Below, piece by piece: positions 19,274-46,867 of a stretch of 64,000 nt of DNA. Both the position numbers and the translations under genes were made by a program. The stretch is taken from the sequence record NC_022096.1; one strand, written 5' to 3'. A model generated the notes under the pieces. That model searched no databases. It saw only the letters and a program-made list of their open reading frames with translations, and was not told the DNA's origin. Every line of letters starts with the position of its first letter. Positions within the stretch are counted from its first letter, which is position 1.

Positions 19274-19359
19274 AAACCTCAACTATCAGCGGCACCACTA
19301 TTGCAGACGCTCATCGCTGACGATGCGACATTGTAGCACGTCTACAATAGCAGAGTCAA
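19274..19359 (-). promoter_or_regulatory. sigma70-type promoter with conserved leader (copy E)
   Basis: TTGACT-N18-TACAAT with extended TG; leader ATAGTGGT..TAGTTGAGGTT shared with the copy at 36378. Confidence 0.65.
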
Positions 19360-19388
19360 GCTGGTCAAAAATTGACCAGCTAGCCAAC

Positions 19389-20894
19389 TTACTCGTCGTC
19401 CGCTTCTTCGCTGATGTCATCGGCCTGACGGCCTTTGGTGTTCTCGGCCTTGATCGCCAACTTCAGGAGCTTGTAGCCTTCGCCGGAGCGAACTTGCTTA
19501 CGGCACCATTCGTACAGGCGGAACGGCTTGACCTTGAACTTGGTGCAGCCCTTCTTGATCAGATCGGGCGAACCATCGATCAGTGCCTTGAACTCGATCC
19601 ACGACACGGTCTTGCCTTCGAGCGGACCGGTGAGGAACTTGAGCTTCTTGCGATTGCCGCCGAGCTGCCCAGTGTTCTTGAGGTACTGATAGGCGTCCCA
19701 GACTCGGCAGAAGCCTTTCGCGTTACCATCGGCATCGCTCACGCAGATGCGCAGCGAAATCTCTGCGGCTTGCGGACCGCCGAGCTTGTTCTTGTGCACC
19801 TTGCATTTCAGGTAACGGTACTTGTCAACGCCTTCACCGGTGATGGTGTCTTCTTCCTCGAACTGGCCCTTGGCGTGGGGAACGCTGACCGAGGTCATCT
19901 TGAGGCGGCAGTCAGAGTAGAAACGCAGCGCCTTACCGCCAGGCTCTTGTTCGGTCGGGCCGTACATTGCCATGGGGATGTCACGCAACTGGTTGATGCC
20001 CAGTACGATGATCCGCTTGGAACGCATTGCACCCTTCACGCGCGGCAGGTTTGCAGCGTGCATACGAGCCTGGGCGCCGAGCGACTTGTCACCCTCGTCC
20101 TTATCGTCGGTCTGCTTCGGCACCATTGCCGGGTACGAGTCGACCAGCACGACGGCTTGGGGACTACCGTCGGGCATTTCGATTCGGAACTTGTTGGTCT
20201 TGCGGAAGTATTCCTTGTCGTACACACCGGCGAGTGCTTTCTGGTTCGCTTTGGTGTTCTCGTAGACGCAGTAGAACTTCCCGTTCTCCTGGATTTTGTC
20301 CGGGAGAATCTTTTCGAGCTTGGCGAGGTAGTTGTAGAAGTCCTCGCCGACCGACGGAGCGTAGTAACGAACGCGCGGTTGGATGACCCAGCCTTTGTCG
20401 TCCTTCACGCCGAACACGTTGTCAACGCTCAGACGCTTGCCGTGGTTCATGTAGCGGAAGATGTTCTCGGCGTAGTCGGCCTGGAACGAACCTTCGAAGT
20501 CGTGCAGCGACGCCTTGCCGTGGAACGTGCTGTCGGTTGCGATTGCACCCATGCACGTCGTGGCGAGCGTAGACTTACACGACTGCTCGCCGCCGAAGAA
20601 CGTGTACCAACCACCAGGCAGCAGGCCGCCAGCGAGTGCAACGTCGATGGAAAGCAGGCCAGTGGATAGGCGATCTTCCGATTCGCTAACCGCCATGGAG
20701 GTAAGGCCGAACTTCTTTTCCATGGAATCGATTTCGGCGTCGAGGTGAGCATACGGATCGAACGCAGCTACTGCCGTGTCGCCCTTCTTGCCTTTCTTCG
20801 CGGTACTCACGTCGATTTCGACATCACCGCCCTTGCCTTTGCCGCGCTTGCTCTTTGCGGGAGCGTCGGCTTCGGCCTTTTTCTTCTTTGCCAT
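19389..20894 (-). CDS. recA: RecA-like recombinase
   Basis: YTFFGGEQSCKSTL (variant Walker A), LVDSYPAM, GINQLR, PGGKALRFYSDCRL; start MAKKKK from the GGAG SD. Confidence 0.9.
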   Translation of the reverse strand: MAKKKKAEADAPAKSKRGKGKGGDVEIDVSTAKKGKKGDTAVAAFDPYAHLDAEIDSMEKKFGLTSMAVSESEDRLSTGLLSIDVALAGGLLPGGWYTFFGGEQSCKSTLATTCMGAIATDSTFHGKASLHDFEGSFQADYAENIFRYMNHGKRLSVDNVFGVKDDKGWVIQPRVRYYAPSVGEDFYNYLAKLEKILPDKIQENGKFYCVYENTKANQKALAGVYDKEYFRKTNKFRIEMPDGSPQAVVLVDSYPAMVPKQTDDKDEGDKSLGAQARMHAANLPRVKGAMRSKRIIVLGINQLRDIPMAMYGPTEQEPGGKALRFYSDCRLKMTSVSVPHAKGQFEEEDTITGEGVDKYRYLKCKVHKNKLGGPQAAEISLRICVSDADGNAKGFCRVWDAYQYLKNTGQLGGNRKKLKFLTGPLEGKTVSWIEFKALIDGSPDLIKKGCTKFKVKPFRLYEWCRKQVRSGEGYKLLKLAIKAENTKGRQADDISEEADDE

Positions 20895-20946
20895 GTACGA
20901 ATCTCCGAAACGGGAACGGGTGGCCACATCGGCCACCCGCAGTCAC

Positions 20947-22158
20947 TTACTCGTCGTCATCATCCCAGGCAGATTTCTTGCCCTTGCCGGATTTCTTCGA
21001 CTTCTTGTCCTTGGTGGATTTGTCGGACTTGGACTTCTTGCCCTTGTCAGACTTCTTGGACTTCTTCGGAGCTTCGTCCTCGTCGTCATCAGACGATTTC
21101 TTGGACTTCTTGGCCTTCTTCTTGGGCTTGTCGTCCTCGTCATCATCGTCGTCCGACTTGGACTTGGACTTCTTGCCCTTCTTCTTGGGCTTGTCATCCT
21201 CGTCCTCGTCGTCATCATCGTCGCTGAACGCCGGCTTGGACTTTTTCTTCTTCTTGGGCTTGTCGTCTTCGTCGTCATCGTCATCGGAGAACGCTTTGGA
21301 CTTCTTCTTGCCCTTCTTGCCTTTCTTCGGCTCGTCATCGTCACCGAGACTGTAGCCGTCACCGTCGTCGTCATCGTCCGGAGTATCACCGCCGACGATT
21401 TCCATGCGCTTGAAGTCTTCCAGCGCTTGCTTGGCGTCCATGCGGCCGGTGACATCGAGCAGGGTTTCGTCGAGCTTCCAGACCAGATATGCCTTCTCGT
21501 CGTCGGTGAGCGGAGTGCGCTCGTCCTTGTCGATGGAATACTTGTCGGTACCCGGAGCCTTCGGCTTGAACTTGACACGAATGTCGCAGCCGTACTTCTC
21601 GTGCGTCACGTCGAACGCTTTCTTGGCGCCGGACTTCTTGTCCTTGGCGGTGTTGCCTTCGCCGATCTCTTGGATACGGCTCGCCATGGTGGAAGTGAAG
21701 CGGCAGACGCGCACCGGAGTCCAGGACTTCGAGCGGATGTCCTTGAAGCCGGACTTCTTCTCTTCCTTGGTGTGCTCTGCCTTCTTGCGCGGCTCATCTT
21801 CCTGCAGCTCGCGGATGATGGCGTTGCCCAGGTAGAAGAACTCGTAGCGAGCGCTGCCGTCCTTGCCGTGAGTCAGGTCGCAGTACGGGCACTTGACTTC
21901 TTTGCCCTTCGCGTCTTTGCGCGGCTCGCCTTCGTGGTTCGGGTCGAACGCGATGCAGTAGCGCGGGATGGTGATTTCTTTCTTTTCCTTACCAGCAAGG
22001 ATGCTGATCCAGTGACGCTTCACTGGCAGAATCTTGCCGGGCAGGCAACGAATCTGCGACCACTCGTCAGCCGGAAACTTGTGCAGTTCGATCACTTCAT
22101 CCAGCTTGACCGAATCCTTGTTACCGGTGCGTGGTTGGAGAGTTCCAAATCCACTCAT
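20947..22158 (-). CDS. single-stranded DNA-binding protein (gp32-like) with long K/D-rich tail
   Basis: CPYC, YLGNAIIREL and GCDIRVKF..GTDKYSI core; about 120-aa DDD/KKK tail; next to recA. Confidence 0.7.
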   Translation of the reverse strand: MSGFGTLQPRTGNKDSVKLDEVIELHKFPADEWSQIRCLPGKILPVKRHWISILAGKEKKEITIPRYCIAFDPNHEGEPRKDAKGKEVKCPYCDLTHGKDGSARYEFFYLGNAIIRELQEDEPRKKAEHTKEEKKSGFKDIRSKSWTPVRVCRFTSTMASRIQEIGEGNTAKDKKSGAKKAFDVTHEKYGCDIRVKFKPKAPGTDKYSIDKDERTPLTDDEKAYLVWKLDETLLDVTGRMDAKQALEDFKRMEIVGGDTPDDDDDGDGYSLGDDDEPKKGKKGKKKSKAFSDDDDDEDDKPKKKKKSKPAFSDDDDDEDEDDKPKKKGKKSKSKSDDDDDEDDKPKKKAKKSKKSSDDDEDEAPKKSKKSDKGKKSKSDKSTKDKKSKKSGKGKKSAWDDDDE

Positions 22159-22188
22159 GTTAGATAACTCCTGGGTTGAACACGTTAG

Positions 22189-23205
22189 TTATTGACAGTT
22201 TTCCTCTAGGGTGTGCTGGCGCATCAGTGCCAACTCGTCAGGAGTGAAGAACTCACCGATGTCAAGTGTGAGCCTAGCGACGCCTTCCCTATCTACTTCC
22301 TTGGCAAGCAACTGGACGAGCTGTTGCGACTCAAGCCGCTCGAAGTCCTCATCCATGACGTGACCGTCCGACAACGTAGAGTACAGCGTCCTCTCGTCAT
22401 CCTCGCCGGGCTTTTTCAGAGCGTCCAGAGAGACACTGAAATTAACCTCGGAGCTTTCGCCGACGGCTAGCTTACGCTTCTGCGATTGCGGCACGGTGTA
22501 CGCCACGCCGTATTCGTGATCTGCGCTGCAAGTTTGAGCATTGAGCACCCACCAGTTGATGTACGTGGTGAGCGCACCCTTGGACGAGTCGTACTTATCC
22601 AAGGCGACGACCATTGCTTTCAGGATCGATTGCTTTAGGTCGTGGAAGTCCAACTGTTGACCTTGGTTAGAGGTCATGTGGGACTTCGCTTGCGTGCTTG
22701 AGTGCCGCAAGTAGTTGTCTAGCGTCGCTGAACGGAACGCATAGAACTTTTCCAGGTAAGCCGATGCTTGAGTGACGATGCGGTACATGTCCGCACGCCG
22801 CGTAATGCCAGCACCGACATAAGCCATGTCGTCAACGGCCAGCTTGTTTTCATGGCTGGGGTCGACCATGAATCTTTGGTACGCCTGCAGAAAGCCTTGG
22901 TTGTCATCCAGAAAGCGCTTGATGAAACAATGGATGAACGAGCGTTCGATGCGGCAATCGCGGAACGTCCGAAACTTGAACGCACCGTCCGTGTGGGTGA
23001 GCACGGCGCACAGGTTCTCAACGAGTTCTTCGCGCGGGACCGACGACAGCTTGCGCTTGCGGTTCGTTGCGACGATTGTGAGGACGTGGGACACCTGTGA
23101 GTCAAACACGGAAGAGTACAGCATCAAAGGCTCAAGCGCCTTGTAGAGGAGCATGTCCATGACCTTCTGGATTTGTTCCCCAGTAAGGTTCTTGTCCATG
23201 CTCAT
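22189..23205 (-). CDS. phage RNA polymerase sigma-70-like factor
   Basis: DLKQSILKAMVVALDKYDSSKGALTTYINWWV is sigma region 2.2-2.4; downstream VSLDA...TLYSTLSD resembles region 3. Confidence 0.8.
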   Translation of the reverse strand: MSMDKNLTGEQIQKVMDMLLYKALEPLMLYSSVFDSQVSHVLTIVATNRKRKLSSVPREELVENLCAVLTHTDGAFKFRTFRDCRIERSFIHCFIKRFLDDNQGFLQAYQRFMVDPSHENKLAVDDMAYVGAGITRRADMYRIVTQASAYLEKFYAFRSATLDNYLRHSSTQAKSHMTSNQGQQLDFHDLKQSILKAMVVALDKYDSSKGALTTYINWWVLNAQTCSADHEYGVAYTVPQSQKRKLAVGESSEVNFSVSLDALKKPGEDDERTLYSTLSDGHVMDEDFERLESQQLVQLLAKEVDREGVARLTLDIGEFFTPDELALMRQHTLEENCQ

Positions 23206-23702
23206 TATCCAAGCAACTCCCGCAGTTCTTTCAACGACAGGTCGGCGTACAAGGTATCGTACAGCTTGATGTTCTGGTCAAGCGGAAGCGTTGGTTCGAT
23301 TCGTGGATCGTTACGTCGCTTCGGTGCGCCCTTTGGGGTTGGCAGGACAAACCCACCGCCGTTTCTAGTTTCAATCATCCTCGCGTAGTGATCGAAGTAG
23401 AGCATGACCCGATCGTGGCGTTCGCGCAACTGCACTTCTTCCTTGATCTTCTCGGCCAGCTTCTCTCGAAACTCCTCGACTTGTGCGCCCTTCTCCTGGT
23501 ACTGCCCGAGGAGCTTGATGTTGTTTGCGTTCACCTGTTCGAGGTTCGCGGCGACGCGCTGATTCTCGGCGATCAACGCTCGCGTCTGCTCGTTGGCTTC
23601 GGCCAGAGACGTAGCAATCCGCGCTTGACCCTCCTGCGCAATTTGCAGTTGAATCTGGAGCGCGGCAATCTTGATGTGCGGATTTTCTTGTGTGTCGCTC
23701 AT
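23205..23702 (-). CDS. coiled-coil hypothetical protein
   Basis: Long heptad region; start MSDTQE. Confidence 0.7.
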   Translation of the reverse strand: MSDTQENPHIKIAALQIQLQIAQEGQARIATSLAEANEQTRALIAENQRVAANLEQVNANNIKLLGQYQEKGAQVEEFREKLAEKIKEEVQLRERHDRVMLYFDHYARMIETRNGGGFVLPTPKGAPKRRNDPRIEPTLPLDQNIKLYDTLYADLSLKELRELLG

Positions 23703-23718
23703 GTTCGTGCATCCGTAG

Positions 23719-24375: not shown

Positions 24376-24376
24376 G

Positions 24377-25102
24377 CTACCTCCGGCTCTTATGCTTGAA
24401 CTTCGTCTGGTTGAAGAACGACTCGGCCTTCTTGACCGTGGCTTGCAGCAGCAACTGGTTGCCGGTCAACAGGCGCGCACGCTTGAGAGTGTCGATAGTG
24501 GTGACCTCGCCGTTGGCTGCCATGAGCGGCGTTTCCAGTTCGGCGTCGAGCGTGCCTGCGTAACGAGTCTCGGCAAGTTCTTCAACCTCGTAAACCAAGC
24601 AGCAGGTGCTCAAGTCAACGATACCGACGCTCAACATCTGCGGACGAATGTCGGTGTAATCGACAGGACCTTCCCACGAGGTAAGGCCGAAGAAAGAGGT
24701 CTCGATCACCTCAGGTTCGCCTGTTTCTGCGCAGGTCGCCTGCTCACGGGTACTGAACGTGGCTTGCTTGTCGCGCAGAATGTCATGCAATACGGCATCT
24801 GGGAAGTAAGTCATCGACTCGAAGATGCGGCGCACCAAGGCACGGTCAGGCGGCGAGAACTTGCCGTCCATGAAAATGTGCAGGAGCTTCCCGTCGAAGT
24901 GCACCAGCTTTATGTAGCGATTGAAGATCGCGGTCAACGCCATGGTCGAATTGAGGTACGCACGCTCGTTGGTGCCCTCAATCAGGAATACGCTTTCGAG
25001 TCCGCGCTTTTGGCTTCTTTTCAGAGCCTCCTCGAACATGTGGTGCGGGAGGGCGAGTTCCCACAGAAGCGGCAGACAGGAAACGTTGGTATCGGCTTGC
25101 AT
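24377..25102 (-). CDS. hypothetical protein
   Basis: 241-aa ORF. Confidence 0.7.
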   Translation of the reverse strand: MQADTNVSCLPLLWELALPHHMFEEALKRSQKRGLESVFLIEGTNERAYLNSTMALTAIFNRYIKLVHFDGKLLHIFMDGKFSPPDRALVRRIFESMTYFPDAVLHDILRDKQATFSTREQATCAETGEPEVIETSFFGLTSWEGPVDYTDIRPQMLSVGIVDLSTCCLVYEVEELAETRYAGTLDAELETPLMAANGEVTTIDTLKRARLLTGNQLLLQATVKKAESFFNQTKFKHKSRR

Positions 25103-25775
25103 CTTCTACTATCCCTACGATCTTTGAATTTGGGCGTGCTCGCTGGACCGCGTCCAGAAATATGCACGAGGTGTCGAGTATGCGAGCATCTTCTGGAACG
25201 CCGAGCCCATCGAAAAATGGCTGCAGGTCCTTTACTCGCATACGCGGCAGCGATCCGGTATTCAACCCAACGACCGCTTTGTAGACGACCCCGTCATAGA
25301 CTTCCTCTCGGAATCGCAGGGGCTCATCCTTTATTTGCACTGGAGTGAATCGGTTGTGGGTTTCAAACCCGGCCAGCTTAGCCTGATACAACACGGTAGC
25401 CAGATCGACCACGTCAACAACAAACACTGCCTGACCGTCTGGCTTCAACAGCCGAAGCAAGTGCTGGAAAATCTCCATACGCTGCGTTCGCCAACCAAGA
25501 GGTGACAGTTGGTGAGACGTGGCGAATAGGTCGTACTCAGGATACGCGAACACGAGGTCCAGTGGACGCTTCAAGTGCTCAAGCACGTCGTACAGGTTAT
25601 GGTGAATCACCTTTAGCCGATCGCCGACGAGCAACTGTCTTGGGTTAGTAACTCGGAAGCTGGTACGAGAAACGACCCAGCCGTTGTGCTCACCGCAACG
25701 AGATATTACGGGAACGTCATCGCAGGTGTAGCATCCACAGCTATAGAAGTTGCGCATCGGCCATACGTCCATCAC
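24978..25775 (-). CDS. degenerate N6/N4 DNA methyltransferase-like protein
   Basis: IHHNLYDVLEHL..LDLVFAYPEY, RLLKPDGQAVF and RILDTSC..KIVGIVED align by eye to beta-class MTases, but DPPY and FxGxG are lost. Confidence 0.55.
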   Translation of the reverse strand: MMDVWPMRNFYSCGCYTCDDVPVISRCGEHNGWVVSRTSFRVTNPRQLLVGDRLKVIHHNLYDVLEHLKRPLDLVFAYPEYDLFATSHQLSPLGWRTQRMEIFQHLLRLLKPDGQAVFVVDVVDLATVLYQAKLAGFETHNRFTPVQIKDEPLRFREEVYDGVVYKAVVGLNTGSLPRMRVKDLQPFFDGLGVPEDARILDTSCIFLDAVQRARPNSKIVGIVEDASRYQRFLSAASVGTRPPAPHVRGGSEKKPKARTRKRIPD

Positions 25776-26900: not shown

Positions 26901-26923
26901 GCTTTGGTACCCACCATAAACAG

Positions 26924-26964
26924 AAAAAGCGCGCCTACTTACTTTCGTGTTGGGCGCGCTTTTT
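26924..26964. terminator. bidirectional intrinsic terminator
   Basis: AAAAAGCGCGCCTA / TGGGCGCGCTTTTT. Confidence 0.7.
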
Positions 26965-26995
26965 CTATGCTTCAATCACCGGCGCACGCCGACGA

Positions 26996-28246: not shown

Positions 28247-28348
28247 GATGGGCTCCAATTGAGTGAGTTGTTTCGAGTTTCACGTTCGAGCAGCCACAGC
28301 GCTCGTTGCAGTGGCTGTTTACACTTTTGTAAGACCGCAGATCAGGGC

Positions 28349-28933: not shown

Positions 28934-28941
28934 GGTGTGTA

Positions 28942-33665: not shown

Positions 33666-33752
33666 TAACCTAAACTAAGTTTGTAACCGTAATGCTGGAT
33701 GCAGCGTGTCGAACACGCAACCATCATAGCATACGATCAGGGTTCGACGCAA
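33666..33752 (-). promoter_or_regulatory. sigma70-type promoter with conserved leader (copy A)
   Basis: TTGCGT-N18-TATGAT (TG-extended), hairpin GCGTGT/ACACGC, then GGTTACAAACTTAGTTTAGGTTA. Confidence 0.7.
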
Positions 33753-35310: not shown

Positions 35311-35375
35311 GTTCGAGTCCTTGAAACGATGAGTGGACCTCTCGGTCCACTCGGTTGAGCCTTTCGGCCGCTAAC

Positions 35376-35645: not shown

Positions 35646-36071
35646 TTAGTTTGCAGCTTGCTTCGACGCGGCCTTGGCTGCCGGCTTGGCAGTTGGCTTG
35701 GTGGCTTTGGCCGGCAGCGGCTTGGCCACGGTCTTCTTGCCGACGCTCGGCTTGGCTGCCGGCTTGGTGGCTTTAGCCGGCAGCGGCTTGGCTACTTTCT
35801 TGGCTTCGGGCTTGGCAGCCGGCTTGACTGCCGGAACCTTCTTCACCGGCTTGGCAGCCACGGTGTTCGCGGCCTTGGTGGCAGCTTGTGCCTTGGTCAG
35901 CACGGCTTGCACGCCGTTGATGGCCTTGTCGAGTTCGTGCTGGGCGGCAACCAGTTTCTTCTCCAGTGCCGCCACGTTCTTCACGGCGCGAGTGTAGTTG
36001 CGACCGGCGGCGTCCAGTTCTTTGCGGACAGCTTTCGCGGAGGTCAGAGCTTGTTCGATTTTCTGAGTCAT
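35646..36071 (-). CDS. histone H1/AlgP-like protein
   Basis: Coiled coil followed by KPAAK and a duplicated AKPLPAKATKP. Confidence 0.75.
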   Translation of the reverse strand: MTQKIEQALTSAKAVRKELDAAGRNYTRAVKNVAALEKKLVAAQHELDKAINGVQAVLTKAQAATKAANTVAAKPVKKVPAVKPAAKPEAKKVAKPLPAKATKPAAKPSVGKKTVAKPLPAKATKPTAKPAAKAASKQAAN

Positions 36072-36150
36072 GTTCGATGTTCCTTTATGTTGGTATTCAA
36101 ACTGTGCGCCACATGCACACATCGAGTGGCACCCGAAGATGCCACTGAAT

Positions 36151-36375
36151 CTATGCAGGCTGGGCAATCGTGTCCGCTGCGGCGAGAACCGCGTCTACAA
36201 ACTTTTTGCGTGCCCGTTGTTCAAGCAGGTTTCTCTTGGCGTGGGTGGTGTCCAACTTCTGGAGTTCCTCCAACTTCACCAGTTGTGCCCAAAGAAACGT
36301 GGCTTGTATAGGTCCGAGTTGGCATCGCACACTTCCGTTGGTGCTATCGAACGTCACTGTTACATGCTGCGTCAT
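36151..36375 (-). CDS. hypothetical early protein
   Basis: First ORF after promoter copy B. Confidence 0.65.
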   Translation of the reverse strand: MTQHVTVTFDSTNGSVRCQLGPIQATFLWAQLVKLEELQKLDTTHAKRNLLEQRARKKFVDAVLAAADTIAQPA

Positions 36376-36377
36376 CT

Positions 36378-36465
36378 TAACCTCAACTAAGTCCGTAACC
36401 ACTATCGCTACAGCACATGCTGCTAACGTGATGTCATTATAGCATACCGGCGGTACCCACGTGAA
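36378..36465 (-). promoter_or_regulatory. sigma70-type promoter with conserved leader (copy B)
   Basis: TTCACG-N18-TGcTATAAT, hairpin, then GGTTACGGACTTAGTTGAGGTTA. Confidence 0.75.
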
Positions 36466-36485
36466 GGCGTTTAGTGGTTATGTTT

Positions 36486-37367
36486 TTAGCTCAGGTATTT
36501 GACGTACCGACTTACGGTGCTGCGAATCGCGTTGGCTTCTAATGCTTTACAGATGAAGTGGATCATCTTGGTATCTGGTTTCCCAGGCACCAGCTTCGAC
36601 AACTTGATCGGCATGATGTCTCGATGAATCGTAACCAGACGCCGGATGAGGCGGAACCGTTCGCGTGCTGCCTCGAAGTTTGCGCGTTGGGTCTTGTTGA
36701 GCACTGAGAGGTCAGCGTCCTCGATACGCTTCGACGTAGCCACGAGTTTGACGATAGCCGCAGGGCCGATTGCTTCGACGCCTGGAATGTTGTCCACCTT
36801 GTCACCTTGCATCATCAACATGCACGGGATGCGGCTTGGCTTAACCAGATAGTGCTCAGCGCAATTCTTGCGCGTGATTTCCAGGTAGTCTTTAGTGTCC
36901 TGCTGGTATTTCAGCAGAGTCACCTTGCCCTTGTCGAGAAGCTGGGCCATGTCCTTGTCGTTGCTGACAATCTCGACCTCCATGTCAGCTTCAACACCCA
37001 GGCGAGTCAACGTGCCGATGATGTCATCCGCCTCGACGCCAGCTTTGTGTACCACCTTGATCCCCATTGCGGTCAGCAGATCATACATGGGCTTGCGCTG
37101 CGGTATCAGGCGAGCTTGCTGCTCAGGGTCTTTCTCTCGATTGCCCTTGTATGCCTTGAATATCTTGTGGCGGTGCGTCGGTGCTTTGCGGTCCATGACG
37201 AACGCAATGTGCGTTGGTTGGCGAGCCAACACGACACTCACCACGATGTTGACGACGCCTTTGATTGCGTTGGTGTGGAACCCTTTCGAGGTCACCAGCT
37301 GAGGTACGGCAAAGAAGGCACGCATCAACACGTTCGAGCCGTCGAAGATCAGGAGCTTCTGTTTCAT
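36486..37367 (-). CDS. 5'-3' exonuclease (Pol I N-terminal/FEN family)
   Basis: LLIFDGSN, EADDIIGTL, SNDKDMAQL, GDKVDNIPGV motifs. Confidence 0.92.
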   Translation of the reverse strand: MKQKLLIFDGSNVLMRAFFAVPQLVTSKGFHTNAIKGVVNIVVSVVLARQPTHIAFVMDRKAPTHRHKIFKAYKGNREKDPEQQARLIPQRKPMYDLLTAMGIKVVHKAGVEADDIIGTLTRLGVEADMEVEIVSNDKDMAQLLDKGKVTLLKYQQDTKDYLEITRKNCAEHYLVKPSRIPCMLMMQGDKVDNIPGVEAIGPAAIVKLVATSKRIEDADLSVLNKTQRANFEAARERFRLIRRLVTIHRDIMPIKLSKLVPGKPDTKMIHFICKALEANAIRSTVSRYVKYLS

Positions 37368-37654
37368 TGGATGGTGTACCACTTTGGTATGTACATGCGC
37401 CGACGTGCGTTCGCCTCAATCAGGAAGAAGTCTCCGTCATCGGAGAGCACTTCTATCTCACCGAGAAAAGCTGGAACGCACCGTTGGGATAGGCGGATGT
37501 TGCGGATGGTGTTGTTGTCGCTCTCAGCGATTGCGCGTGCATACTCCACCCAATGCTCAGGTGTTTTGCACGCGAATCCCTCGACAGTGATCACCACTGG
37601 CTGCGGTGGTTGAATTACGACAACCATCAACAGCGCAACCAGAAAGAGTCTCAC
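37364..37654 (-). CDS. small secreted/membrane protein
   Basis: Hydrophobic N-terminus MRLFLVALLMVVVI. Confidence 0.65.
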   Translation of the reverse strand: MRLFLVALLMVVVIQPPQPVVITVEGFACKTPEHWVEYARAIAESDNNTIRNIRLSQRCVPAFLGEIEVLSDDGDFFLIEANARRRMYIPKWYTIQ

Positions 37655-38064
37655 GGCTGAGCCTGCAAGGCACGCTCCCAGAGCAACGTCTGCGGGCCGG
37701 CCTTATCGAAATAGTTGGGAGAGCTGTACATGACCTTGGCGTCCTGTACGAACTCGATCACGAACAGCGTGCCGTTGAGGGTGCGAATAGGCGCATACCC
37801 GAGAACGTCGAGCGGGTGGGTGTTGTTCAGGAAGCGGCAGCGATTGGCCTTTCGGGCATCACGCACGAATTGCACAAACTCTGCGCTCTGGTTGTTGCCG
37901 GCGAGAGCAACGATGGCTTTGGCGTCCACAGAGGCATCACACACGATGGCATCGGGATTACCCGTGTCGGCAAAGGCAGGTATCGGCGTGAAAGACGAAT
38001 CGCCTTTGGGTTGAGTAGCGCAAGCAGCAAGCGCAATGGTAGCAAGCAAAGCCAACTTTTTCAT
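37651..38064 (-). CDS. lipoprotein
   Basis: MKKLALLATIALAAC lipobox. Confidence 0.75.
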   Translation of the reverse strand: MKKLALLATIALAACATQPKGDSSFTPIPAFADTGNPDAIVCDASVDAKAIVALAGNNQSAEFVQFVRDARKANRCRFLNNTHPLDVLGYAPIRTLNGTLFVIEFVQDAKVMYSSPNYFDKAGPQTLLWERALQAQP

Positions 38065-38065
38065 G

Positions 38066-38287
38066 TTATTCCTCGTCCGAATGTTCTGCAATTGTTTGTG
38101 GCGTGATCATGGCCACCTGCACCCAATGAGCGATGACCAGAGTAACGACCAGAGCTGCGCACAGTGCGAGCCTTGGAACCGACGGGTCGGGCGTCTGTTC
38201 AAGCACGCCGAAGATAATCAGTAACGCCATCAGGTACATCATGGCGTAGTAGCGGTGTACGATAAACTTCAGGCTTGGTCGGTTCAT
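38066..38287 (-). CDS. small two-TM membrane protein
   Basis: Two hydrophobic segments. Confidence 0.65.
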   Translation of the reverse strand: MNRPSLKFIVHRYYAMMYLMALLIIFGVLEQTPDPSVPRLALCAALVVTLVIAHWVQVAMITPQTIAEHSDEE

Positions 38288-38300
38288 GTTCGTGTGATGC

Positions 38301-39110
38301 CTAGAGAATGTTCCATATACGATCGTGGATAGACCACAGGGCGAAAGCCTCGGGTTTGGCTTTCTTTCTGTGCCTGTTGATCACTGCTGGGATGTGAGGC
38401 ACGTTGCGTTTCGAGTGAGCGCGTCGCGCCTCTTTGTAGCTATTGTATTCACGGCTCGGCGGGTAGCCATCGAGTTCGATGGTGTACGTCGCCTTGTCCT
38501 TCTTGTCGAGCCGATCCTGTGCGTCGTCATGCAACGTCGTGAAGTAGTTGAGACGGTTGCGGTAGCGACCACGAGTTGCAGCCACGCGAGCCTCGTATTC
38601 CCGCTCCAGCGAATCGAGCTCCTCGATCATCTGCGCGTGCAGGTCAGCCTTCAGGTTGGTCAACGTCTTCGGATCGAGCGCTGCAATGTACTCAGCAAAC
38701 GCCAGATCAAGTTTGCGCTGGTTGGGCTTGCACCAGTGAGCCAGTGCATCAGAGAACGAGCCGACAAACAAGCCGCCTGCAAACTCACCAGACATTCGGA
38801 AGACCCCGACTGCCCACTGGGTGGCTGCGTTCTTGATCGGCAGGTCGAAGCCCTGTGGCGGGGCATTACCGCGGAACAGGGCGAACACCAGGTCGCTGTC
38901 GAACGGCCGCAGCTTGAACACTGGGCTCGGCTTACCGCGCTGCGCAAACACAGCATCTACGCACACGGAAAACGGCTCGTCTAAGCGAAGGTCTTCCCAG
39001 TAGTTGTTTGGCCAGTCAAGCGGAGTTCGCGCCTTGAGGAGAGCACTCTGGCCGAGCCTGTTCAACAGGGCGGAGTGCGTTTGCGCAACCGAGAGAGACT
39101 TGAGTTTCAT
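38301..39110 (-). CDS. hypothetical protein
   Basis: 269-aa ORF. Confidence 0.7.
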   Translation of the reverse strand: MKLKSLSVAQTHSALLNRLGQSALLKARTPLDWPNNYWEDLRLDEPFSVCVDAVFAQRGKPSPVFKLRPFDSDLVFALFRGNAPPQGFDLPIKNAATQWAVGVFRMSGEFAGGLFVGSFSDALAHWCKPNQRKLDLAFAEYIAALDPKTLTNLKADLHAQMIEELDSLEREYEARVAATRGRYRNRLNYFTTLHDDAQDRLDKKDKATYTIELDGYPPSREYNSYKEARRAHSKRNVPHIPAVINRHRKKAKPEAFALWSIHDRIWNIL

Positions 39111-39121
39111 TCGTAACCCTC

Positions 39122-39143
39122 AAAAGGCGACCCGAAGGCCGCC
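39122..39143 (-). terminator. intrinsic terminator
   Basis: GGCGGCC-TTCG-GGTCGCC-TTTT; same stem as at 61377 and 61886. Confidence 0.8.
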
Positions 39144-39153
39144 CAAGCGTATG

Positions 39154-40077
39154 TTAGAAGAGGAGTGTCCAGACGCAGCGCTCGGCGTCATACGTGGCGT
39201 ACTTGTGCCAAACGCCAGCGCCGTCTACGTCTGTCTCTTTTACAGTCCACAAGATCGTGGCGTCGATCATGCCGTGCTCACGTTCGTGGCGAGCCATCAG
39301 GCCGCGCACGCTCTTGACCGCAGTTGTGCGCAGAGGCGTCTTGTCATTGTTCGATCCGAGCACCAGACCGTACACGCGCGTGGCGTCATTCTCTTCCTGC
39401 CACTGCGCCTCTTCCGCATGAATCAACTGCGCCTGTTGTGCGGCCCACTGTTCGATCAGCTTTTTCCGCTGGGTGCGCCACTCCTCATCCAGCTTCTGGA
39501 GTTTGTGGTCACGATGCACGGTCACCGACTTGTTCATCTTTGGTAGCAAGCCCGAAGTCTCTTCGGCCATTTGTTTGCGCACCAGCTTTATCAGGTCAGC
39601 GTGCGAGGCGTTGATGAACTCGTACAGGCAATGGTCCCAGTCGCCCATGAAAACGTGGGCTTGTTCGTTGTTGTTGCTTACGTCAACCACAACCCAGCCG
39701 TACTCATTCATGTTGGTACTGTTGGGATTGACACACATGGTGGGCGCCAATGCAGCGCGCTGGTGAAGTGAGTCACTCCACGGAAACACGGAAGCGGCAC
39801 CACGAAGTTCGCAGTTGCTCGGCATCAGGTAGCGAGTGTGCGACCAGAGCGAACGCCAGAAGGCGTGGACAATGTCGCCGTCGATGTTGTACCAGCGGTC
39901 CCGCGTTGGGAAGCCGATTGGGGTACGCAGGTCGAAAGCCGCCTGCTCTGGTGCTTTCGTACCGTGGTAGCCTGCACGAACCAGATTGCCGTCAGGCAGT
40001 GCGAACACTCCCATCAGCTCGCACAGGCTTTCCGGAGTTTCGTAACCGCTAGTGTCTACAGTCGCACGTTCAGTCAT
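39154..40077 (-). CDS. hypothetical early protein
   Basis: First ORF after promoter copy C. Confidence 0.7.
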   Translation of the reverse strand: MTERATVDTSGYETPESLCELMGVFALPDGNLVRAGYHGTKAPEQAAFDLRTPIGFPTRDRWYNIDGDIVHAFWRSLWSHTRYLMPSNCELRGAASVFPWSDSLHQRAALAPTMCVNPNSTNMNEYGWVVVDVSNNNEQAHVFMGDWDHCLYEFINASHADLIKLVRKQMAEETSGLLPKMNKSVTVHRDHKLQKLDEEWRTQRKKLIEQWAAQQAQLIHAEEAQWQEENDATRVYGLVLGSNNDKTPLRTTAVKSVRGLMARHEREHGMIDATILWTVKETDVDGAGVWHKYATYDAERCVWTLLF

Positions 40078-40080
40078 ATC

Positions 40081-40167
40081 TAACCTCATCTAAGTCCATA
40101 ACCAATATACAATACAAGCATGATGCTTGCCCGTGCTCAGTATAACACACCGGCGGATGAGTGTCGA
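40081..40167 (-). promoter_or_regulatory. sigma70-type promoter with conserved leader (copy C)
   Basis: TCGACA-N17-TATACT (TG-extended), hairpin CAAGCA/TGCTTG, then GGTTATGGACTTAGATGAGGTTA. Confidence 0.75.
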
Positions 40168-40202
40168 TGGAGATAGCGGTTATGTTTATAGCGCAGGTAA
40201 CG

Positions 40203-40231
40203 ACAAACCCCGACACTAGGCCGGGGTTTGT
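40203..40231. terminator. intrinsic terminator
   Basis: ACAAACCCCG / CGGGGTTTGT followed by T-rich tail. Confidence 0.7.
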
Positions 40232-40235
40232 TTGA

Positions 40236-40394
40236 TCACAGTTCGCGCAGTTCGCGCTGGATTTCACGATCAGCAATGCGGCGCTCCGCTCTATGGCAGA
40301 GGGTCTTGAGTTCGCGCCCGTAGCCGATGCTACTGAACGGGCGACGACTCCAGAACTCGCCGGGTTGTTTGCTGCCGTGTTTGGTTCTGCTCAT
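40236..40394 (-). CDS. small basic protein (52 aa), not in the ORF track
   Basis: Own translation MSRTKHGSKQPGEFWSRRPFSSIGYGRELKTLCHRAERRIADREIQRELREL; GGAG SD. Confidence 0.7.
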   Translation of the reverse strand: MSRTKHGSKQPGEFWSRRPFSSIGYGRELKTLCHRAERRIADREIQRELREL

Positions 40395-40421
40395 GGTGGT
40401 TCTCCGAATATGACGGGAATG

Positions 40422-40448
40422 TCATATTCGGATAGTACGGTTGGTCAT
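40422..40448 (-). CDS. putative leader peptide MTNRTIRI
   Basis: Strong AAGGAGGT SD; stop codon lies in the 5' arm of a 12-bp hairpin covering the next SD. Confidence 0.45.
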   Translation of the reverse strand: MTNRTIRI

Positions 40449-40465
40449 AGCGGACCTCCTTGGTG

Positions 40466-40951
40466 TTATATCACGTTGCCGACATCGATGTTCTTCTGCG
40501 ACGCGAAGTCAGCAGGTCGCTTGTACTGTTCCTGCGGAATGTGACGGCCGTCTTCGTCGAGGTAACCCCACTCGTACTCTTTGGGCTTGCGTGGATGAAC
40601 GATGATCGTCCAGACGCCGCCCTTGGGGATACTGATGATGCGATGATAGCGCAGCCGTGCGATGTTGCACCAGCGGAACGCGGTGTGCAGCACCTCGCGA
40701 GTCACAGGCTTTTGACAATCGCAGTCGGGCACAGTGACGACCTGCTCCTCGACATACCAGCCTTTGACAACCATCGACTTGAACCCGTACGGGTGGTTGT
40801 GATGGATGCGAGTGTCGACCATCTTGATGTGGTGCAGCCGCACGCAAAACGGCAGATTCCACTCAGGCGGTACGATGTACCAGCGGTCCATGTAGCGACC
40901 GATGTTACGGTTGCGGTGCAGACCAATCAGTGCTTTGAATTTTTGCAACAT
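40466..40951 (-). CDS. cupin-fold protein
   Basis: VRLHHI....HHNHPYGFKSMVVKGWYVEE...YHRI...VWT cupin motifs. Confidence 0.65.
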   Translation of the reverse strand: MLQKFKALIGLHRNRNIGRYMDRWYIVPPEWNLPFCVRLHHIKMVDTRIHHNHPYGFKSMVVKGWYVEEQVVTVPDCDCQKPVTREVLHTAFRWCNIARLRYHRIISIPKGGVWTIIVHPRKPKEYEWGYLDEDGRHIPQEQYKRPADFASQKNIDVGNVI

Positions 40952-40956
40952 TCTGA

Positions 40957-41475
40957 TCACCCCAGGTAATGCGCTTTGCCGCAGTTGCACGGCTTTGGCG
41001 ACACGGCCTTCTTGACTTCGGTGAACAGCTTGTTGGTGGAAGACACGGAGAAATACGCATCGGTATTCACGCCGTTCTTCTCGCGGTAGCGGCGGTTCAC
41101 ATCCGCGCTGTTGAACATCGCGCCGTACGGCCACGATTGCTGATTCGCCTTTTCCCACATCGGGATGTCGAAGGCTTCCCGCTCGATTGCGCTCAGTTGG
41201 CTGGGTGCAACCTTCTGGTCGACCTTGGCACGGTTGGCTTTCAGCAAGCGGCCGTTGTCGGAGACCATCATCATTGCAGACATTTCGATCTTGCTATTGA
41301 TGATGGTGTACGAAACGCTGTCTCTCGACTCCTTGCGGATTGCAGGAACCTTGAACCAGGTGTCGCCGGTGAATTGGTGCTCAGGAATTTCCGGGCAGTA
41401 CCAGTTACGCATGAACACATACAGGACGGAGTTGAACTCCAAGCCCTGCGGATTGTCGTGTACATAGATCATCAC
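40957..41475 (-). CDS. hypothetical protein
   Basis: 172-aa ORF with GAGGT SD. Confidence 0.7.
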   Translation of the reverse strand: MMIYVHDNPQGLEFNSVLYVFMRNWYCPEIPEHQFTGDTWFKVPAIRKESRDSVSYTIINSKIEMSAMMMVSDNGRLLKANRAKVDQKVAPSQLSAIEREAFDIPMWEKANQQSWPYGAMFNSADVNRRYREKNGVNTDAYFSVSSTNKLFTEVKKAVSPKPCNCGKAHYLG

Positions 41476-41981: not shown

Positions 41982-41985
41982 GATG

Positions 41986-43602: not shown

Positions 43603-45618
43603 TTAGTCCTCCAGACCCAGCAGACGGCGACGGTATACAGCATCTTCTGCAACGACGCCACGGAACCAGAGTTCTTGCTCGTGGTTGGCGAACGGATTGA
43701 TGCGAATGAGATTGCGGTGTTCAGGCGAGAACGCGATCGGTTCTAGGAAAGTCTCATCGACCTCACCCCAGCCCTTGATGCGAACGATGTCCTTGTCCTT
43801 GACTGCCTTGGGTGCGGCTTTACGGCACTCATCGAAGGTCATGCCACCGTAGAGTTTGCCGTCATGGAGCACAGCATACAGCGGAGCCTTGACGCACCAG
43901 ACGCGGCCTTCTTTGAACAGGTCTGGCAGCAGTCGGTAGATCGCCGCTAGGAACAGTACGGCAATGTGCCCACCATCCGGGTCCGGATCGACCAGGAAGA
44001 TGATGTTGCCAGTACGCAGATTGTCGGTCGACAGACGCGGGTTCTCAGCTTTCGGATCGAGCGTCTTGATGTCGGCGCCCAGGCTGATGAGCATGTTCTG
44101 GATTTCTTCGTGACCCAGAATCTTCGCCAGGGTCGCTTTCAGTGCGTTCAGTGGCTTACCGCCAGCACCCAGCACTTCCTGATAGTTCGCGTCTCGGGCG
44201 TCGATTGCAGTACCTGCGGCCGAGTCACCCTCAACGATGAACAGCTCGCGCTCATGTGGCTTGGCCTTGTCGGCGACAGCAAGTGCGCTCGGCAGACTGG
44301 AGCCCTTGATCGACTTCTTCGCGTCAGCCATGGACTTGACGACAGCAGCGAGTTCTTCACGGCCCTTGTTCATCACCAGTGCGCGCTTGATGATGGTCTT
44401 CGCAACGCGCTGGTTGGCTTTGAAGTACTCCTCGAACACTGGCAGCATTGCCTCGTGAACTTCGCGGTCGACCTTCGAAGCCAGCTTGTCTTTCACCTGC
44501 GAGGTGTACTGGGCGCCGTGCATACGCCAGTCAAACATACCAACCAGACCGATCAGCAGGTCAGAACCAGAGAATCCATTGCCGCCTTTCTTCTTGCCCT
44601 TGGGCTGAGTCATGTACGGCTTGATCGCAGCCATCAGGGCGCTGGTAAATCCGGTGACGTGCCAGCCACCATCGACAGTCGGCGACGTGTTCACGAACGT
44701 CAGGAAGTGGTCGGCATCCGGATGGTCAGCCCACACGACAGAGCAACTGATGTTGTCGGTCTTGAACGTCATGGGCTTGCCGATCATGCCCAGTTCGCGT
44801 TCCTCACACATTGCCTTGGGTACCCAAGCCAAGTCCTTCTTGTTCAGGAAGGTAAACGCTTTGGTCTTGCCGCCCTTGATGACCTTGAAGCGAATCTCCA
44901 GACCTGGGTTCAGGTTCGCCATGTTCTTCAACCACATGGCAATCGGCTTGGCCTGGGGCGAGGCATGCACATAATCTTTCGGCAGGGCCTTACCACGACG
45001 GGCAGACTCAGACACGACGGTCTGGTCGAGCTTGCCCGCGATGATGGTGCCGTACTTGCTCTGCTTCATCGACAGGCGCGAGGCCACGTCCTTGTCGATG
45101 CTCTTGACCTTGATCGGGTCTTTACCCTTGGTTGTGATTTCGCCTTTCGAGAACGACTGGAAGGCGCACTTGCCGTTGTACATACTCCAGACACGCAACT
45201 CCTCGCACACGGCGTTCACCGCCGCAACACCAACGCCGTGAGTACCGGCCGAAGTCTTGTACGAATCGGAGTTGAACTTGCCACCTGCGTGGGCGCGAGA
45301 GAACGCGGCCGTCATGATGGTCTCTTTCGTCCCGTCTTTCAACTTCTTGTAGTCGGTCGGGATACCGCCAGCAGCGTCGGCGACGATGTGGAAGTCGGCG
45401 TCGTAGTCGAGGATGACCTCGATCAACTTGTTACGACCGGCGATGGCCTCGTCGTATGCGTTGTCTACCTCTTCCTTGATGACACGGTACGCCATGTCAT
45501 GACCGAGGTTACCCAAGTACATCGTGGGGTTTATACGGATGCCTTGGAGGCCCTCCGCGATGACGAAGCCCTCCTGAGAGGCAGACTTCTTCCCCTTCTT
45601 GATCTTTTCCTTAGCCAT
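43603..45618 (-). CDS. gyrB: type IIA topoisomerase subunit B (GyrB/ParE family)
   Basis: EEVDNAYDE, SAGTHGVG, LFIVEGDSA, VDPDPDGGHI, RIKGWGE. Confidence 0.92.
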   Translation of the reverse strand: MAKEKIKKGKKSASQEGFVIAEGLQGIRINPTMYLGNLGHDMAYRVIKEEVDNAYDEAIAGRNKLIEVILDYDADFHIVADAAGGIPTDYKKLKDGTKETIMTAAFSRAHAGGKFNSDSYKTSAGTHGVGVAAVNAVCEELRVWSMYNGKCAFQSFSKGEITTKGKDPIKVKSIDKDVASRLSMKQSKYGTIIAGKLDQTVVSESARRGKALPKDYVHASPQAKPIAMWLKNMANLNPGLEIRFKVIKGGKTKAFTFLNKKDLAWVPKAMCEERELGMIGKPMTFKTDNISCSVVWADHPDADHFLTFVNTSPTVDGGWHVTGFTSALMAAIKPYMTQPKGKKKGGNGFSGSDLLIGLVGMFDWRMHGAQYTSQVKDKLASKVDREVHEAMLPVFEEYFKANQRVAKTIIKRALVMNKGREELAAVVKSMADAKKSIKGSSLPSALAVADKAKPHERELFIVEGDSAAGTAIDARDANYQEVLGAGGKPLNALKATLAKILGHEEIQNMLISLGADIKTLDPKAENPRLSTDNLRTGNIIFLVDPDPDGGHIAVLFLAAIYRLLPDLFKEGRVWCVKAPLYAVLHDGKLYGGMTFDECRKAAPKAVKDKDIVRIKGWGEVDETFLEPIAFSPEHRNLIRINPFANHEQELWFRGVVAEDAVYRRRLLGLED

Positions 45619-45708
45619 GTTCGATTGAACTCCGTTGGTTCGGTATGAGGACTAGAGCGAAAGTGTTGGACCTGATTGCAGGCCGTACGTAAGCTGTTTA
45701 CACTTACG

Positions 45709-46041
45709 TCATTTTCGAGTTGTGGTTTGTTTGGCCTTGTCGAGTTTTGCTTTTTCCTTCTTCGCCCAGGTGTAACCAGAGTCGCCGCCCCAAAGCAGCC
45801 ATGCGATATAGCCGTTGCTGGGGTTGGCTCGATTGCCAAAATTTGCCGCACGTTTGTCCACTTCATGGCGGGCGAAGAAGGAGACCATGCGACGTATCAC
45901 AGCATCGCTGACGGTGCGACCCTGCGACAACTGGCGGGCGCGTGCCCAGCCAACCTTCGTACCTCCCCTCTTAAACTCTTTGTGCAAAGTCAAGCCAAGA
46001 GCGGCAGCACGTCGAACGGATGCAGGTGCAGTGCGAGACAT
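45709..46041 (-). CDS. conserved phage protein of unknown function
   Basis: GGTKVGWARARQL..RMVSFFARH..GYIAWLLWGGD pattern, recalled from many phages. Confidence 0.7.
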   Translation of the reverse strand: MSRTAPASVRRAAALGLTLHKEFKRGGTKVGWARARQLSQGRTVSDAVIRRMVSFFARHEVDKRAANFGNRANPSNGYIAWLLWGGDSGYTWAKKEKAKLDKAKQTTTRK

Positions 46042-46085
46042 AGCGAGTAGTCCTTTGAGGTGAGAGAAAAACGACAAACCCAGCA

Positions 46086-46469
46086 CTAGGCTGGGTCGGT
46101 CTGTTGGCGTATGAATATTGGATCGATGTGGCCTTCGATGTACCAGCACACGTCATCTGGTCGGTGTGCGGGATCGTCGTTGTCGTAACTTCGCCACTCT
46201 GGGTCCGGCCGTAAGGTTGACTTGAACAGCGAAACGTCCACTTCAAGAACGACAGCATCAGGGCCTTTGAAGAAGGCGGCGTTCAACGTATCGTCGGTCA
46301 ACACGTCCGCATCGAGCGCGAGAAACACGCGCCCTGCAACTTCGCCGCCGTCTGTGGCGCGCGGCATGTTCGGCAGTAAGCCGTCACGCAGAATTGCGCT
46401 CACGTTGTCACGATGCGTAACGTGAACAAGCACGTCTGGGATATGGTCCATGAGAGTCTTCGCCGTCAC
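46086..46469 (-). CDS. ADP-ribosyltransferase-fold protein (Tpt1/KptA/DarT-like)
   Basis: LVHVT..NV.AIL.DGL.P, VFLA, VVLEVD, WY..GHIDP..I: the H-x-T ART pattern. Confidence 0.65.
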   Translation of the reverse strand: MTAKTLMDHIPDVLVHVTHRDNVSAILRDGLLPNMPRATDGGEVAGRVFLALDADVLTDDTLNAAFFKGPDAVVLEVDVSLFKSTLRPDPEWRSYDNDDPAHRPDDVCWYIEGHIDPIFIRQQTDPA

Positions 46470-46768
46470 AGGTCTATGATGGCGCCGACAATCGGCATTT
46501 GGAGTTCGTCGTCTTCGTGGCAGCCCATGCTAGCCATCCAGTCGAGAACTTCTTCCTCGGTCAGGATGCCAGGCTCAGATGCGCCCGTTTCACGCAGCAG
46601 GTCAGGCAACACAGCCGCAGACAACGCCTCAGTTACATGCTTGCCATTCATGACTTCGGCATTGCCGTCAGCCAGTTCAGCCGTCAGGTGCAGAATCAAG
46701 CTGGACGGCAACAGGCCATCGACATCACCAGACTCCAGTGCCGCTTTGACGTGTTCGTAGTTGGACAT
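46466..46768 (-). CDS. hypothetical early protein
   Basis: First ORF after promoter copy D; AGGAG SD. Confidence 0.7.
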   Translation of the reverse strand: MSNYEHVKAALESGDVDGLLPSSLILHLTAELADGNAEVMNGKHVTEALSAAVLPDLLRETGASEPGILTEEEVLDWMASMGCHEDDELQMPIVGAIIDL

Positions 46769-46786
46769 GTGCAAACTCCTTAAACG

Positions 46787-46867
46787 TAACCTATGAGCGT
46801 AACCAATATAGTTGACACAATCTAGGTGTCACGCATCCAGTATATCACACCAGACACACGCAGACAA
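46787..46867 (-). promoter_or_regulatory. sigma70-type promoter with conserved leader (copy D)
   Basis: TTGTCT-N17-TATACT (TG-extended), hairpin TGACAC/GTGTCA, then TATATTGGTTAC..AGGTTAC. Confidence 0.7.

Follow-up and report, generated by a model that had tools for sequence, protein, structure and literature searches.

At which level, DNA or RNA, could a short sequence element act that recurs behind several promoters of one phage genome, and does it recur by selection, by shared descent or by mobility? This question is raised by five promoter regions in a stretch of 64,000 nucleotides (the window) of Pseudomonas phage PaBG (NC_022096, 258,139 bp, genus Baikalvirus), which comprises genome positions 62001–126000, window position 1 being genome position 62001; its identity to the PaBG sequence is 100%. 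A sequence-only reading had pointed to five minus-strand sites at about 19.3, 33.7, 36.4, 40.1 and 46.8 kb (here cassettes A to E), each with a -35 box, a spacer of 17–18 nt, a TG-extended -10 and a conserved block starting 33–35 nt further on, and all of these elements were found in place. Our comparisons indicate that the five sites are members of a homologous family of regulatory cassettes of about 130 bp and, as far as conservation can tell, that the cassette is a selected switch for early genes. In most copies, an inverted copy of the block precedes the promoter; it was overlooked in the first reading and bears directly on the question of a DNA repressor versus an RNA operator. We tentatively favour an action at the RNA level, with a leader block that can be folded back on by the upstream arm (rough probability 0.42).

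The PaBG genome paper lists a sigma-70-like gene (gp118) and a possible second sigma gene, without phage RNA polymerase genes, and contains no promoter analysis; no paper on transcription in PaBG or Baikalvirus was found in the literature. Since PaBG is without an RNA polymerase of its own, early transcription must use the host polymerase. All five sites belong to an extended run of minus-strand genes for replication and recombination and of ORFans, and all cassette features given below for the window are on this strand. Transcription starts, timing and the binding factor are inferred throughout.

Promoters and leader block of the five sites

Each of the five promoters combines a TGn-extended -10 (A at position 2, T at position 6) with a -35-like hexamer at a spacing of 17–18 nt. 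Cassette A (19330–19359) features TTGACT (19354–19359), 18 nt and TGC-TACAAT (19330–19335), cassette B (33723–33752) TTGCGT (33747–33752), 18 nt and TGC-TATGAT, and cassette C (36436–36465) TTCACG, 18 nt and TGC-TATAAT, while the spacer is 17 nt long in cassettes D (40139–40167; TCGACA and TGT-TATACT) and E (46839–46867; TTGTCT and TGA-TATACT). In a whole-genome scan with TGn-TA-[TCG]-[AG]-[ACT]-T, a near-consensus -10 together with a -35 box appeared only at the five window sites, and cassettes C, D and E were among the top hits in a consensus promoter scan of an 18-kb stretch. Across the 23 analysed members of the family described below, TG at -15/-14 is present in 21. The five sites are best described as early promoters predicted for host sigma-70 that share a leader element specific to the phage lineage, both their starts and their use by the holoenzyme being predictions.

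The surroundings of the promoters differ. A terminator-like hairpin (about 19360–19380) directly adjoins the -35 of cassette A, a layout shared by the orthologous copies of two relatives (G001 and G003), and an intrinsic terminator (about 40205–40232) precedes the upstream arm of cassette D. Terminators are likewise located ahead of several cassettes in relatives, but not ahead of B, C or E; the promoter of cassette B overlaps the 3' end of gp132.

The pattern GGTTA-N3-ACTTAG-N3-AGGTTA, i.e., the exact 23-nt block, was found three times in the window, in cassettes B (33666–33688), C (36378–36400) and D (40081–40103), compared to 0.03 expected occurrences; none of 100 shuffles gave three, and these are the sole exact occurrences in the 258-kb genome. 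Cassette E carries a variant detected by profile search (GGTTACGCTCATAGGTTACGTTT, 46782–46804) and cassette A a degenerate block (GGTGCC...ATAGTTGAGGTTT, 19274–19296; nhmmer E 4e-10). The gap between -10 and block amounts to 33 nt in A, 34 nt in B and E, and 35 nt in C and D. Some details of the first reading had to be revised accordingly. It had listed D and E as partial copies, whereas the partial ones are A (19.3 kb) and E (46.8 kb), cassette D (40.1 kb) being full; its N3-4 spacer is always N3 in full copies and never N4; and the 18-nt period of GGTTA, which it had assigned to A, B and C, exists in B, C and D. An overlap of the block with the Shine-Dalgarno sequence had been seen in B and C. 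This holds for C, where GAGGT of the block is the Shine-Dalgarno sequence of an unannotated 74-aa open reading frame (ORF; 36151–36375), and also for D, where it serves gp141 (ATG at 40077), whereas gp131 behind cassette B (start 33650) has its own GAGGA. Behind cassette E, gp150 (ATG at 46768) has a separate AAGGAG. The family-wide consensus of the block is ATAnT-GGTTAYGnnnTTAG-nTn-AGGTTA with a start codon 2–50 nt downstream, and AGGT represents the Shine-Dalgarno sequence in most cassettes.

A side observation concerns the promoter spacer. In a subfamily including PaBG 4410, 20580 and 255093 and copies of G001, but not the window cassettes C, D and E, the conserved spacer ACTACTGATnnCAGTnnTG contains the palindrome ACTG-N4-CAGT between -35 and -10, which could be a further operator.

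Conservation and position of the cassettes

With the nhmmer profile, nine homologous cassettes were found in PaBG, all on the minus strand, with blocks starting at genome positions 4410, 12742, 20580, 81296 (A), 95688 (B), 98400 (C), 102103 (D), 108804 (E) and 255093. They precede operons of small ORFan or DNA-metabolism genes, the four cassettes outside the window leading arrays of small hypothetical genes. In the alignment, homology among the five window sites extends about 75 nt upstream of the -10, and the elements follow each other in the order upstream arm (in most copies), -35, spacer and TGn -10, ~30 nt of fast-evolving sequence and conserved block. An exact-pattern scan of IMG/VR yielded eight loci, seven of them from PaBG-like contigs and several with two matches. 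The complete relative G001 (277.6 kb) harbours eight cassettes, all on one strand, the fragments G002–G005 contain two to four each, and the distant relative G006 (259.6 kb; exonuclease 45% identical) has seven cassettes of the same plan; the metagenome scan contributed one further distinct cassette. The earlier proposal of an early-type operon set sharing promoter plus leader is consequently backed by nine copies in PaBG and 7–8 per complete relative, with the block conserved.

Neither pattern nor model detected a cassette in Lu11, the closest relative in culture. Across 596 Gb of bacterial genomes, the block pattern gave 18 scattered single matches, which is below the chance estimate, and a role as rRNA or tRNA complement or as host element was rejected on these grounds. 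As far as these searches reach, the block element is thus confined to this lineage of phages. Of the downstream genes, gp131 and gp141 matched only PaBG itself in the phage collection, and Pfam returned no significant family for genes behind the cassettes, one protein showing weak, sub-cut-off matches of coiled-coil type.

Strong hints for selection come from the cassette junctions, which are orthologous across PaBG and four uncultured relatives from IMG/VR (G001, G002/3 and G005). They are located after UvsX (83–85% protein identity), after the 5'-3' exonuclease (59–69%), after gp142 (54–59%), before gp131 (59%) and after gp39 (46%). Neutral DNA is scrambled at such divergence, and the ~30 nt between -10 and block are indeed unalignable at these junctions. 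Sequence is retained, by contrast, in the -35, in the extended -10 and in the block, which places the block under purifying selection. Moreover, identical junctions despite flanking proteins of only 46–85% identity imply that the cassettes are old and positionally stable rather than recently mobile. The mobile promoter cassette considered in the first reading therefore lost its support as far as recent mobility is concerned, as neither target-site duplications nor presence/absence differences were seen. The cassettes do border replaced genes: at D, at C (compared to G001) and at 20580, relatives have another or an unrecognisable gene immediately behind the cassette, whereas upstream synteny holds.

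In this respect they resemble the PeSL (promoter-early stem-loop) cassettes of T4-like phages, which are repeated modules of a sigma-70 early promoter, a stem-loop and a Shine-Dalgarno sequence bordering variable genes (Arbiol et al., 2010; Comeau et al., 2014, PMC4122927). PeSLs are the closest described objects, and the PaBG cassettes extend this kind of composite phage promoter cassette. Both are short modules in repeated copies that combine a strong early promoter of sigma-70 type with a stem-loop and, at the 3' end, a Shine-Dalgarno sequence plus start codon, and both are scattered in early, ORFan-rich regions and adjoin genes that differ between relatives. However, they occur in unrelated phage groups (T4-like phages versus Baikalvirus), the PeSL stem-loop is a terminator upstream of the promoter, whereas the PaBG hairpin is located downstream of the -10, and neither a conserved leader block nor an inverted flanking repeat has been described for PeSLs, in contrast to the 23-nt leader element and its mirror copy around the PaBG promoter.

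Consistent with this likeness, the cassettes could be PeSL-like recombination and expression modules without a dedicated regulator, maintained by common descent and ordinary constraints such as those on a strong promoter, on an A-rich, UP-like region ahead of it, on a leader that is AU-rich and unstructured, and on a Shine-Dalgarno sequence, with repeats that mainly serve as homology patches for the shuffling of early genes. The replaced downstream genes at three junctions with intact upstream synteny, the terminators often found ahead of the cassette and the A-rich middle of the arm at -50 to -60 would fit such an origin. Generic constraints, however, do not explain the near-invariant GGTTA, TAG and AGGTT in roughly 30 cassettes of at least five genomes, nor do they explain the inverted copy or the concerted block change in G006 (see below), and gene conversion confined to 23 nt is improbable. 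We therefore consider this explanation unlikely.

A trace of cassette decay was also observed. At PaBG genome positions 4955–5230, a -35 and the spacer ACTGATTGCAGTTATG remain, the -10 is lost and a truncated block-like sequence (TGGTTCGATAGG) follows.

The 5' hairpin and the concerted change of the block

The sequence-only reading had described a hairpin of variable sequence after each -10. Folding of this region agrees with it for cassettes B (33704–33718; 6-bp stem at the transcript 5' end, -9.2 kcal/mol, z -2.0), C (36406–36428), D (40114–40130; 7-bp stem, -8.5 kcal/mol, z -2.3) and E (46813–46832; -6.1 kcal/mol, z -1.9), which together range from -6 to -10 kcal/mol with z -1.9 to -2.3, but leaves only a weak hairpin in the initially transcribed region of cassette A (19309–19326; -5.9 kcal/mol, z -0.4). 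Among the 23 cassettes, the ~30 nt after the -10 reached a mean z of -1.3 versus shuffles, with z ≤ -1.5 in 12, and about a third lack a convincing stem. Orthologous C-type cassettes have a hairpin at the same place with unrelated sequence and stem, a pattern expected of selection for structure. A start about 7 nt after the -10, as predicted here, would put the stem at the extreme 5' end of the mRNA, which is the classical position of a stabilising stem-loop.

The distant relative G006 gave further hints on the nature of the block. In all seven of its blocks, the 18-nt unit GGTTC-N6-TAGTTAA occurs twice in tandem, and a Shine-Dalgarno sequence comes separately after it; compared to this, the PaBG block amounts to one 18-nt unit and the five bases that open the next. 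The distance between -10 and block (about 33 nt; 33–36 nt overall) is kept in G006 despite unrelated intervening sequence. A partner confined to the lineage would account for such a concerted change better than the universal translation machinery.

A promoter followed by a hairpin and a conserved single-stranded box recalls the layout of rrn and lambda nut leaders, and a -10-like CATAnT immediately precedes the block. The block might hence serve as a later promoter for the phage sigma factor gp118 or, in nascent RNA, as an antitermination signal of the nut/put type; terminators do occur between cassettes. Both options appear highly improbable to us: start codons lie 2–3 nt past the block in C and D, so that a promoter there would leave no leader, the block has no resemblance to boxA, it is another motif (GTGTAAAC) that is similar to the middle/late promoter motif annotated in Lu11, and the inverted upstream copy would be left unexplained. 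Rfam 15 likewise contained no matching family: only tRNAs reached the gathering threshold in the window, and no credible match was obtained for cassette C at E ≤ 10. CATAnT itself was discarded as a second promoter or sigma-dependent pause, being promoter-like only in E and not conserved in G006.

Besides these elements, (A/G)TGTAAAC, usually after A-rich sequence, recurs intergenically in the window at 19266, 28324, 45703 and 49464 (minus strand) and 58139 (plus strand), and elsewhere in the PaBG genome at 6978, 34522, 187679 and 247190. It resembles a 16-nt "putative middle/late promoter" annotated in Lu11 (aaCTGTAAATa) and may, judged by this likeness, be a promoter type read with a phage sigma factor. 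At site A it falls within the cassette leader, which would give a tandem of early and later promoter.

The inverted upstream arm

The profile search also reported reverse-strand self-matches. They correspond to an upstream arm, the consensus of which (TACCTGAnCTAnAAACATAACC) is the reverse complement of the block. It is present in 16 of 23 cassettes, including C, D and E of the window but not A, and B has no clear arm. In cassette C, the arm (IR-L, TACCTGAGCTAAAAACATAACC, 36476–36497) overlaps the stop codon of gp137, which encodes the 5'-3' exonuclease, together with the four codons before it, in cassette D it occupies 40178–40199, and in cassette E (46878–46899) it begins right after the stop codon of gp151. 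All 16 arms end 10–11 bp before the -35 and leave a loop of 73–75 bp, and the promoter is thus enclosed by a 22-bp inverted repeat.

Several comparisons suggest a modest covariation of arm and block. In their common register, which includes ACCU with AGGU, 73% of cells pair versus 25–40% when the partner columns are slid, and changes occurred on both sides at 10 of 25 arm-block pairs. The covariation score of 0.132 exceeds that of shuffles (0.095 ± 0.012) and was reached by 2 of 500. Duplexes of arms from the same cassette are more stable than those from different cassettes (-17.9 vs. -15.3 kcal/mol; permutation p = 0.002; p = 0.03 by simple identity). Examples of double changes are cassette E, in which AGGT became ACGT in both arms (G:C to C:G), and cassette 4410, in which TAG became TTG in both arms (A:U to U:A). 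Complementarity can moreover reach beyond the block: the arm flank of cassette E carries TCCT opposite AAGGAG. Of the seven G006 cassettes, three possess an upstream inverted unit, whose end is separated from the block by 104, 111 or 120 nt, and in one G006 cassette (L150) complementarity amounts to about 32 nt and runs through its own Shine-Dalgarno sequence to the bases before AUG.

We therefore tentatively propose that the cassette acts at the RNA level. Host sigma-70 RNA polymerase would fire the cassette promoters, downstream of which the sigma gene gp118 is also located, immediately after infection. Transcripts would start about 7 nt after the -10 and bear a stabilising 5'-terminal stem-loop. 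The block could then act as a single-stranded ribosome-loading segment, with AGGT as Shine-Dalgarno sequence in most copies, and at the same time as the shared recognition site of a phage-lineage-specific factor controlling the early set post-transcriptionally. The arm would be absent from transcripts of the cassette's own promoter and present in read-through from the preceding operon, where it would pair with the block and hide it, so that each gene would be expressed and regulated only via its own promoter. This logic is known from T4 gene e (lysozyme) and from IS10 ("fold-back inhibition"), where read-through transcripts can fold back over the ribosome binding site. In both cases, the promoter lies between complementary segments and transcripts of the internal promoter lack the 5' arm; T4 e and IS10, however, are single loci with gene-specific stems, whereas the arm sequence here is conserved and recurs at 7–9 loci per genome, and predicted masking is partial.

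In support of RNA action, the block is located in the 5' UTR, the arm begins with ACCU opposite the Shine-Dalgarno sequence, the arm flank extends over the Shine-Dalgarno sequence where the latter lies outside the block (E and L150 of G006), and the distance between arm and block is free in G006. In modelled RNAs, the Shine-Dalgarno sequence had an accessibility of 0.53 in transcripts of the cassette's own promoter and of 0.36 in read-through transcripts, the latter showing a mean block-arm pairing probability of 0.48. A "transcript-origin licence", i.e., a downstream arm serving as leader and factor target and an upstream arm silencing this leader in transcripts of foreign start, is rather doubtful; if true, a single sequence code would enforce the temporal shut-off of 7–9 operons genome-wide.

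A number of points weigh against RNA action. The covariation is only suggestive, as the tests are inflated by sequence relatedness, and all statistics are fragile because the sequences stem from about five lineages. Across the PaBG clade, complementarity beyond the block is not significant (p = 0.22), the arm variants TATCC, TCACC and TTTCC break pairs rather than wobble, and one C.A mismatch is nearly constant in the arm-block pairing. Five cassettes retain the arm behind a terminator, whereas B-type cassettes are exposed to read-through but armless in the PaBG clade. Modelled accessibility of the block itself decreased from 0.42 to 0.34 only, with no masking in some cassettes, and the constant arm positions around the promoter would equally suit a DNA mechanism. 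Since pairing alone leaves the conservation of the block sequence unexplained, a hypothetical trans factor must furthermore be assumed. Finally, the only public sequence runs containing the region are contigs of wastewater "RNA-Seq" metagenomes, which are probably DNA, cover the region piecemeal at 90–100% identity and are uninformative on RNA ends.

An alternative option, which we regard as nearly as likely as RNA action and yet as doubtful in itself, are twin DNA operators: block and inverted copy, centred near -60 and +39 and about 96 bp apart, could bind one phage protein that bridges or roadblocks the promoter and shuts off early transcription. This is compatible with the conservation of the same positions (GGTTA, TAG, T and AGGT) in both arms, with the fixed promoter distances of both arms in 16 cassettes and with a -10-to-block distance that is kept even in G006, while the distance from block to start codon varies between 2 and 50 nt. 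Arms retained behind terminators, where they would rarely be transcribed, fit DNA sites as well, and the concerted block change in G006 is expected for sites co-evolving with a phage protein. Nevertheless, neither the covariation and compensatory double changes of the arms nor the 32-nt extension into the gene-specific Shine-Dalgarno region in G006 is expected for protein sites, and both would require the additional assumption of gene conversion between the arms. With their period of 18 bp, successive direct-repeat units come to lie on different faces of the helix; the arm distances in G006 (104, 111 and 120 nt) do not differ by full helical turns; and 7 of 23 cassettes carry the downstream site alone.

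A candidate for the operator-binding protein is gp184, an Arc-like ribbon-helix-helix protein of the early region, in which Pfam recognises an Arc domain (E 2.9e-20). Its counterpart in G001, which has the same block, is 60% identical, and none was detected in G006 or Lu11; the link of gp184 to the operators is, however, circumstantial. The "putative DNA-binding protein" gp148 was rejected as regulator, as G001 shares the block but has no counterpart of it. Promoter-flanking operator pairs that loop DNA are known from gal (OE/OI) and lac (O1/O3), and PaBG resembles them in having two copies of one site at about -60/+40, ~96 bp apart, around a sigma-70 promoter. Unlike gal and lac, the PaBG sites are asymmetric direct-repeat units in inverted orientation, their spacing varies in the distant relative, the arms covary and the binding protein is a candidate only.

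The inverted repeat could also be the mark of a miniature mobile element with an internal promoter that spread through the genome, like the Correia repeat-enclosed elements of Neisseria, which comprise 100–150 bp with terminal inverted repeats of about 22–26 bp and an internal promoter. In PaBG, about 120 bp lie between 22-bp terminal inverted repeats in multiple copies, and both elements share repeats that begin and end in TA (TACCT...AGGTA in PaBG), the internal promoter and a possible hairpin RNA. We nevertheless judge such an origin to be very unlikely. In contrast to Correia elements, no sign of transposition was found and the positions are conserved over deep divergence, with neither empty sites nor target duplications at the orthologous junctions described above (46–85% protein identity); A-type and B-type copies have the block without a left arm; and the left arm is interlaced with the final gp137 codons throughout the relatives, each of which has its own version of the sequence.

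Significance of the cassettes

Irrespective of the level of action, the cassettes provide a first concrete map of probable early promoters in PaBG-like jumbo phages, which depend on the host polymerase, with nine in PaBG, and they take the PeSL concept of promoter modules to phages other than the T4-like ones. They would represent a compact regulatory code consisting of one 23-nt element that flanks the promoter as an inverted pair and has undergone a concerted change in a sister lineage. Should all early operons be gated by this element, in translation or in transcription, it would offer a handle on early-to-middle switching in a large and poorly known phage group. With its strong promoter, stabilising 5' hairpin and defined leader, the cassette is also a candidate for a portable part in Pseudomonas.

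Further sequence observations

Several short motifs were observed around the start codons. In several cassettes, the motif AAAGTTTGCACA follows closely on the block and precedes, spans or follows the start codon (window 19222–19233 and 46771–46780, minus strand; genome 4380–4390 and 20520–20535; L013, L025 and L028 in relatives). AAGTTTGCAC has three minus-strand occurrences compared to 0.2 expected. The start-codon context CGAACATG is over-represented in the PaBG genome (39 vs. about 7 expected; e.g., window positions 35311–35318, 36072–36079 and 45619–45626), and 26 of the 39 sites open an ORF of at least 50 aa. In two leaders with CGAACATG, ATG is followed at once or one codon later by TAA overlapping TAAGGAG, which results in a start-stop mini-ORF.

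The 74-aa ORF behind cassette C fills part of the 414-bp "intergenic" gap between gp137 and gp136; as a 45% identical counterpart is located at the same place in G002, it is probably a real gene. Another open frame of about 264 aa (24978–25775, minus strand), without a Pfam match, lies in a 669-bp unannotated gap between gp122 and gp121. PaBG-like sequence matching window positions 36000–41000 at 90–100% identity was present in several wastewater metagenome runs of 2024–2025, which suggests that close relatives circulate in sewage.

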